DNA from: Obrimoposthia wandeli
Taxonomy: Eukaryota
Length of the DNA: 64,000 nucleotides
Assembly (NCBI GenBank): GCA_977020255.1
Contig: CDROCS010001350.1
Location: 1-64,000, forward strand
Direction of reading: 5' to 3'
Shown here: piece after piece, positions 5,629 through 6,880 of the stretch
How the letters are laid out: the number at the start of each line of letters is the position of its first letter
Position numbering within the stretch: the stretch's first letter is position 1
Position numbers and translations under genes: made by a program
Notes under the pieces: model-generated
What the model saw: the letters and a program-made list of their open reading frames with translations, nothing else
Database searches by the model: none
What the model was told of the DNA's origin: nothing

Positions 5629-5895
5629 ATGGCTGATTTTGACTGGATGCTGGGCGTCATTATGTTATCGGGTTTTTTGTTTGCAGCAATTGCGAGATTC
5701 AATTTACACCGATATGTACAATATAAAAGAGTGCCGGCAGATTTTGATAACCAGCAGTATTTGGAGGCGTTAGAATCAAGCTCTCCAGAAACAATTTTAG
5801 ATGATGGACTTCATCAATTATTCAAATATGTCATGGCTGGTATAATTATTTTTCTTATCGCTAGTACAACATTAGTCTCTATTATTTTTGATTAA
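5629..5895 (+). CDS. Hypothetical two-TM membrane protein
   Basis: 88 aa with hydrophobic N- and C-terminal segments; AAGGA RBS. Confidence 0.65.
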   Translation: MADFDWMLGVIMLSGFLFAAIARFNLHRYVQYKRVPADFDNQQYLEALESSSPETILDDGLHQLFKYVMAGIIIFLIASTTLVSIIFD

Positions 5896-5937: not shown

Positions 5938-6102
5938 CTAACGCTCATAACCTGGATCCGTTGGTACTTTCTCTGGTGTGTTTTGTTGAGCTTCATCGTA
6001 TTTTTTGTGTAGTTCGGCAATAAGCTCCAGATCTAACTTTGCAAAGAAGATGTCTTCTTCGGCTTGACCTTTTCGACGTACTGTTTCGTTGAATACAGAC
6101 AT
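5938..6102 (-). CDS. Small protein (54 aa) with an IF1-like motif; not in the ORF track
   Basis: Hand translation: MSVFNETVRRKGQAEEDIFFAKLDLELIAELHKKYDEAQQNTPEKVPTDPGYER*; GAGG RBS 8 nt upstream of the ATG; TATAAT on the minus strand at 6184-6189. Confidence 0.75.
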   Translation of the reverse strand: MSVFNETVRRKGQAEEDIFFAKLDLELIAELHKKYDEAQQNTPEKVPTDPGYER

Positions 6103-6199
6103 GGCATTCACCTCTAATAACCTGCTATTGATAATTTTAGTTTATTTTAAGCAGAAGTGTTATTAGAGGGAGATGATTGAGCGATTATACCGCGACGAA

Positions 6200-6880
6200 T
6201 TACGCTTGCTTTAATGTCGCTAAGACGTTTGATAAAGAACTGGTTACCGTATGGCCTAATGTTAATATTTCTGCACTGGGTTGTACTAGATCGGGTATTT
6301 GAAATGTTTGCATATTGGCACTGACGGCGGCAAGCACACCATTATTGGAATCTTCGAAAGCTAAGCAATACTTAGGTTTAATATTTAAACGGTTTGCGGC
6401 AAGTAAGTAAATTTCAGGATCTGGTTTACCGTTTTTAACTTCACAACCTGTCGTAAGGTTATCAAAGAAATGATCGAGACCTGCAAATTTAAGCTTTATT
6501 TTAGCGACATCATTTTGTGTTGATGTGGCGACTGCTGTCGGTATATTGTTGTCTTTGAGCCAGGTTAATAACTCAACAACCCCTTCTTTCACCGGGATTG
6601 CTTGGTGCTTAACCACTGCGTTGTAGCGTACACGCCATGCTTCATGAAGGACTGGGTAGTCAAGATCGCTACCGTAACCCGCGCGAAGAACTTGTTCAAT
6701 ACCTTGGGCATTACGACCGATAATATCTAAGTAGACATCTTCTAAAAAAGGAATAGATAATGAGGCGCACGCTTCTTCGAACACACCTTTACACACGCGT
6801 TCAGTGTCGAGAAGTAGTCCGTCCATATCAAAAATAGCTGCTTGATAATTCACTTTTTGTTTATCCTCTATTCGCTTCAA
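6200..6880 (-). CDS. HAD-superfamily phosphatase (beta-PGM/CbbY-like)
   Basis: FDMDGLLLDTE motif I, VATST motif II, GKPDPEIY, FEDSNNG motif IV. Confidence 0.92.
   Translation of the reverse strand: MKRIEDKQKVNYQAAIFDMDGLLLDTERVCKGVFEEACASLSIPFLEDVYLDIIGRNAQGIEQVLRAGYGSDLDYPVLHEAWRVRYNAVVKHQAIPVKEGVVELLTWLKDNNIPTAVATSTQNDVAKIKLKFAGLDHFFDNLTTGCEVKNGKPDPEIYLLAANRLNIKPKYCLAFEDSNNGVLAAVSANMQTFQIPDLVQPSAEILTLGHTVTSSLSNVLATLKQA

Follow-up and report, generated by a model that had tools for sequence, protein, structure and literature searches.

A small protein of a gammaproteobacterial family carries a predicted helix that weakly resembles the mitochondrial ATPase inhibitor IF1

A conserved 54-residue protein of Moritella belongs to an unnamed family of small gammaproteobacterial proteins whose predicted N-terminal helix weakly but specifically resembles the part of the mitochondrial inhibitor IF1 that plugs ATP synthase, making it a candidate for a bacterial regulator of that kind. 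The gene lies in a window of 64,000 nucleotides (contig CDROCS010001350.1, assembly GCA_977020255.1, deposited under Obrimoposthia wandeli), at 5938-6102 on the minus strand, with its ATG at 6102-6100 and its stop codon at 5940-5938. The genome is a Moritella, since the protein is 98% identical to a Moritella dasanensis protein. A first-pass annotation, made from the sequence alone, had described this ORF as an unannotated 54-aa protein with a GAGG ribosome-binding site and an upstream TATAAT, had aligned it by eye with the inhibitory helix of bovine IF1, and had proposed an IF1-like ATPase regulator or a related small helical inhibitor. We confirm what it observed. Its interpretation is supported only in part: an IF1-like helix is supported by family-level comparisons, while membership of the IF1 family and ATPase regulation remain inferences.

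First, we examined whether the ORF is a genuine gene. The Shine-Dalgarno GAGG lies at 6114-6111 on the minus strand, 8 nt upstream of the ATG, and is conserved in six Moritella species. An in-frame GTG at 6111 would give a protein of 57 aa, but the family-wide alignment starts at the ATG. The description as unannotated holds only for this window, since orthologues in several public Moritella genomes, at 65-98% identity, are annotated as hypothetical proteins. Eighteen Moritella-type relatives, 51-98% identical overall, keep residues 1-34 (6001-6102) almost unchanged while the last 20 residues (residues 35-54, 5941-6000) vary freely, and dN/dS between Moritella species over codons 2-34 is 0.03-0.17 with dS near saturation. 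The gene order consisting of a DcuC transporter, a HAD-type hydrolase (6200-6880, minus strand), the small gene and then a convergent small membrane-protein gene is kept in other Moritella genomes, and this DcuC-HAD linkage is specific to Moritella. The convergent gene is an 88-aa ORF with hydrophobic stretches at 5629-5895 on the plus strand, with no Pfam family on record. Another explanation could be a spurious ORF, or a leader peptide or regulatory RNA region without a functional protein product, given that the ORF is very short, that a conserved hairpin lies upstream and that no evidence of translation was obtained. However, we consider this very unlikely, as it is contradicted by the purifying selection, by the conservation of the amino-acid motif across Vibrio, Photobacterium, Psychromonas and Chromatiaceae and in 95 protein clusters, and by the occurrence of the helix as an in-frame fusion to a 150-residue domain.

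The RNA evidence, which came from assembled contigs only, is thin. One 210-nt contig from an aquatic metatranscriptome matches 6001-6098 at about 91% identity, covering only the conserved N-terminal coding part and diverging where the variable tail begins; it is a relative's copy in an RNA library and does not show transcription of this gene. Upstream of the gene, six Moritella species share an inverted repeat on the minus strand, whose 5' arm (CCUCUAAUAAC) lies at 6159-6169 and overlaps a possible -35 hexamer, and whose 3' arm (GUUAUUAGAGG) lies at 6111-6121 and contains the Shine-Dalgarno sequence. The arms form 11 perfect pairs, or 13 or more with a bulge, and flank an AT-rich box at 6131-6148 that is nearly invariant in Moritella and includes the predicted -10 TAAAAT at 6139-6134. 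The TATAAT of the first-pass annotation is present at 6189-6184 on the minus strand, 11 nt after the stop of the HAD hydrolase gene, and is an alternative -10 that would place the whole hairpin in the 5' UTR, although it is conserved in only about 4 of 6 Moritella species. As RNA the repeat folds at -20.8 kcal/mol (z = -4.43), but it shows no compensatory changes, and it may be either a translation-blocking hairpin or a DNA operator around a promoter. It is not a family-wide feature, being seen clearly only in Moritella.

To determine how widely the protein is distributed, we searched a profile of the Moritella proteins against 1.84 billion representative proteins, which returned 95 clusters at E<=1e-3. 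All share an N-terminal consensus close to M-x-D-F-x-E-K-L-R-L-K-G-x-A-E-E-D-I-Y-F-A-(K/R)-x-D-R-E-L-I-x-A-L-H, in which E16 and F20 are invariant and A14, D17, A21 and L27 are above 90%. A scan of one genome per species found 140 genomes with a relative, of which the best 80 are all labelled Gammaproteobacteria or Pseudomonadota, namely Moritella, Motilimonas, Photobacterium, Vibrio, Aliivibrio, Psychromonas, Chromatiaceae (Thiorhodococcus, Thiohalocapsa), Candidatus Thiodiazotropha, Sedimenticola, Haliea and Thiogranum. With a 40-column family profile, each of 84 fetched loci and the window holds exactly one member and nothing else scores at E<=1, the window ORF scoring 72 bits (E 1.3e-20). 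Members share a 35-residue N-terminal helix followed by a variable tail, and the family comes in three forms. Short forms have 53-70 aa, as here. Long forms of 88-98 aa (for example, in the fetched loci numbered L, L041:6001-6288, L055:4355-4630 and L083:6001-6276) carry two further conserved helices with motifs like F-E-K-x-F...T-x-K-H-x-K-K-P and L-L-x-A-Y-R-x-L-L. These extra helices have no match to IF1 and add nothing to the IF1 alignment when long forms are compared over their full length (probability 40%), and the AlphaFold2 model of a long-form member reached only pLDDT 57.6, too poor for a fold search. Finally, four natural fusions (L035:3925-4530, L044:6001-6600, L073:6001-6636 and P0058), partly in Chromatiaceae, join the helix to a complete cpYpsA SLOG domain (Pfam E 1e-42 to 1e-56), the helix behaving as a portable module attached to a predicted nucleotide-binding domain. 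No cpYpsA genes lie next to the unfused members. Every database name for members is "hypothetical protein", neither Pfam nor NCBIfam has a model for the family, and we found no paper on it.

We next asked whether the resemblance to IF1 can be detected from single sequences. The count of nine identities in 24 positions against bovine IF1 residues 24-47, given by the first-pass annotation, is correct in the ungapped register (Q27, A28, E29, E30, F34, E40, A43, L45 and K47). This pairwise similarity is not significant on its own: BLASTP against a bovid IF1 finds no alignment at E<=100, and the window protein hits nothing in Pfam (IATP included, even at E<=10), NCBIfam or the PDB. Family members scanned individually reach about 13 bits against Pfam's gathering threshold of 25 bits for IATP (PF04568), so that no member qualifies for that family by its own criterion.

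Family-level comparisons gave a different picture. When 101 members were scanned against Pfam at E<=1, IATP was hit by 35 (best E 0.0073) and the next family by 5, and the same exercise against NCBIfam, PHROGs and PADLOC gave no family with more than 3 members, indicating that the helix is not generally sticky. The absence of a repeated PHROGs or PADLOC family, together with the absence of a plasmid hit, also gave no support to a phage or defence origin. The 40-column N-terminal profile searched against 177,635 distinct PDB sequences returned 13 matches at E<=10, of which 12 are IF1 chains or the plant IATP-domain protein At2g27730, all in one register (profile 11-38 to bovine IF1 25-52) and with a best E of 0.066; yeast IF1 chains were not among the matches. 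To compare profiles directly, we collected IF1 sequences using a bovine IF1 sequence that served only as bait and that matched a bovid IF1 annotated with PF04568 at 99% over its full length; the resulting profile of 24 IF1s contains vertebrates only and lacks fungal, plant and protist IATP proteins. Against this vertebrate-only profile, hhalign gave a probability of 80.8%, P 1.3e-5 and a score of 30.3 over 26 columns, whereas 400 shuffles of the family's columns gave a mean of 10.8, a standard deviation of 2.7 and a maximum of 25.7, and the reversed profile scored 8.7. Composition alone does not explain the match. In the reverse direction, a model of the vertebrate IF1 helix searched against 11,025 six-frame ORFs from the fetched loci listed 82 at E<=10, of which 79 carry the family motif and one of the other three lies at the family gene's position in its locus (best E 2e-4), that is, about 80 of 85 family ORFs were recovered from a background of about 10,900. 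The by-eye match to IF1 is a reproducible signal at family level; it appears only with family profiles, in the register proposed by the first-pass annotation. However, its database-wide significance is borderline, with E-values of 0.02-0.4 and an hhalign P that becomes about 0.3 after correcting for the roughly 25,000 Pfam families, so that an honest estimate is only about 0.07-0.3, and short charged helices are prone to spurious profile matches.

To determine which residues match, we used the division of the IF1 helix into three groups by Bason et al. (PMC3041923), in which group 1 supplies binding energy in the final complex, group 2 is needed on the pathway to inhibition and group 3 is dispensable. 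Residues 11-36 align with bovine IF1 25-50, family position being IF1 position minus 14. Among 83 members, F22 corresponds to position 8 (L, M, I or V in all), A28 to position 14 (A in 78), E30 to position 16 (E in 83), Y33 to position 19 (Y, F or W in 83), F34 to position 20 (F in 83), Q41 to position 27 (L in 78, the one difference), L42 to position 28 (I, V or L in 81) and L45 to position 31 (L, M or I in 83). Seven of the eight group 1 residues are thus identical or conservatively kept, and they are the family's most conserved positions. Several group 2 positions are also kept, R25 becoming K/R, K39 becoming R/K, E40 becoming E/Q and A44 staying A. E30 makes the only important salt bridge, to beta-R408 (PMC3041923). 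That arginine is conserved in bacterial beta subunits. In IF1 the long helix spans residues 21-50 and residues 47-50 already emerge from the F1 surface, so that the family's conserved block (residues 1-35, equivalent to IF1 15-49) covers about the segment that would be buried. It is also close to the minimal inhibitory segment 14-47 reportedly defined by van Raaij et al. in 1996. AlphaFold2 predicts a single helix at residues 2-40, with pLDDT 93-96 over residues 11-30, followed by a tail that is predicted disordered (pLDDT 52-56 over residues 41-54).

The protein also differs from IF1. It is bacterial, has no presequence and no flexible N-terminal region, its well-conserved residues 1-10 have no likeness to IF1 15-24, and the Moritella form has no His-rich coiled-coil dimerization tail, although a conserved His or Arg at position 32 lies two to three residues before IF1 H48/H49. 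What both share is a small size, one long helix with the motif A-E-E-(D/E)-x-(Y/F)-F followed two turns later by E-x-(L/I)-x-x-L, and a remainder that is variable or disordered. The zeta subunit of alphaproteobacterial F1Fo-ATPase (DUF1476) is a stand-alone bacterial gene outside the atp operons whose N-terminal segment mimics IF1 (PMC9317440), and it sets the precedent for the mechanism considered here. However, zeta has a four-helix bundle and is confined to alphaproteobacteria, whereas the structure predicted here is a single helix and DUF1476 is not among the families hit by more than one of the 101 members in the Pfam scan. The C-terminal domain of subunit epsilon is the accepted hydrolysis inhibitor in gammaproteobacteria and occupies the same alphaDP/betaDP/gamma region as IF1 and zeta (PMC9317440), but epsilon is a rotor subunit encoded in the atp operon, and no sequence relationship was detected. 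Cyanobacterial AtpTheta, from a different lineage, is a protein of about 50 residues encoded outside the atp operon and is reported to inhibit ATP hydrolysis when energy is low.

We then looked at the gene neighborhood. Clustering of the neighbors in 80 loci found none shared beyond single genera and no atp genes, which neither supports nor contradicts an action on F1 since the zeta gene also lies outside the atp operons. In six Photobacterium-type loci (L011:6001-6177 with L011:6499-9039, and five similar loci) the small gene lies about 330 bp upstream of a heavy-metal P-type ATPase (E1-E2_ATPase plus HMA domains) on the same strand, and upstream of it lie a cNMP-binding histidine kinase and a response regulator. 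This P-type ATPase would be one candidate partner if the helix were truly related to IATP but docked onto a different energy-converting complex or ATPase, as does At2g27730 (subunit P2), a mitochondrial protein found in structures of respiratory complex I rather than on F1. At2g27730 was the best PDB match of the full-length family profile (E 0.021; 0.12 with the N-terminal profile) and aligns in the same register as IF1, so that an IATP-like helix need not target F1. We consider this reading unlikely, as the neighborhood is not conserved beyond single genera and the kept residues are the ones that bind F1 beta in IF1.

Taken together, our analysis establishes that the gene is real and conserved, that the family exists, that its helix is predicted, and that the sequence resemblance to IF1 is specific, reciprocal and centered on the F1-contacting residues, whereas the binding partner, the inhibition of F1 and the physiological role are inferred. 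In the reading that we tentatively prefer, the ORF encodes a small cytoplasmic protein whose function lies in its 35-residue amphipathic helix, which would act like the inhibitory helix of IF1. During ATP hydrolysis it would insert into a catalytic alpha/beta interface of the F1 sector of the F1Fo ATP synthase, where the invariant Glu16 (IF1 E30) would pair with the beta-subunit arginine equivalent to bovine R408, and this would block rotation in the hydrolysis direction and save ATP when the proton- or sodium-motive force falls. However, another explanation, nearly as plausible to us, could be that the likeness to IF1 is chance or general convergence between charged amphipathic helices, and that the protein binds some other partner as a small regulator or adaptor. 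The borderline database-wide significance, the lack of an IF1 counterpart for residues 1-10, the lack of a genomic link to atp genes and the SLOG fusions, which suggest that the helix is a general docking module, all fit this view. Against it stand the specificity of the IATP hits across four profile libraries and the PDB, the failure of any column shuffle to reach the observed score, the separation of the family from background ORFs by the vertebrate IF1 model, and the fall of the matches on the F1-contacting residues.

Current reviews assign ATP synthase inhibitors by lineage, with epsilon in bacteria, zeta in alphaproteobacteria only and IF1 in mitochondria only, IF1 being treated as having arisen after the mitochondrial endosymbiosis (PMC9317440). 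It remains possible, though we consider it somewhat less likely than not, that IF1 is not a purely eukaryotic invention and that gammaproteobacteria, including Vibrionaceae, Moritella and sulfur-oxidizing Chromatiaceae, carry free-standing IF1-like helices that act as one-way inhibitors of their F1Fo-ATPases alongside subunit epsilon, the family being either a distant homolog of mitochondrial IF1 or an independent convergence on the same binding groove. Even if the protein does not inhibit F1, what is new is a well-delimited small-protein family with a sharply conserved helix and natural fusions to a SLOG nucleotide-binding domain. If the family does inhibit F1, gammaproteobacteria, including tractable Vibrio and Photobacterium, would gain a third layer of control over ATP hydrolysis, the question of where IF1 came from would reopen, and a 35-residue natural peptide would be available as a probe or lead against bacterial ATP synthases.
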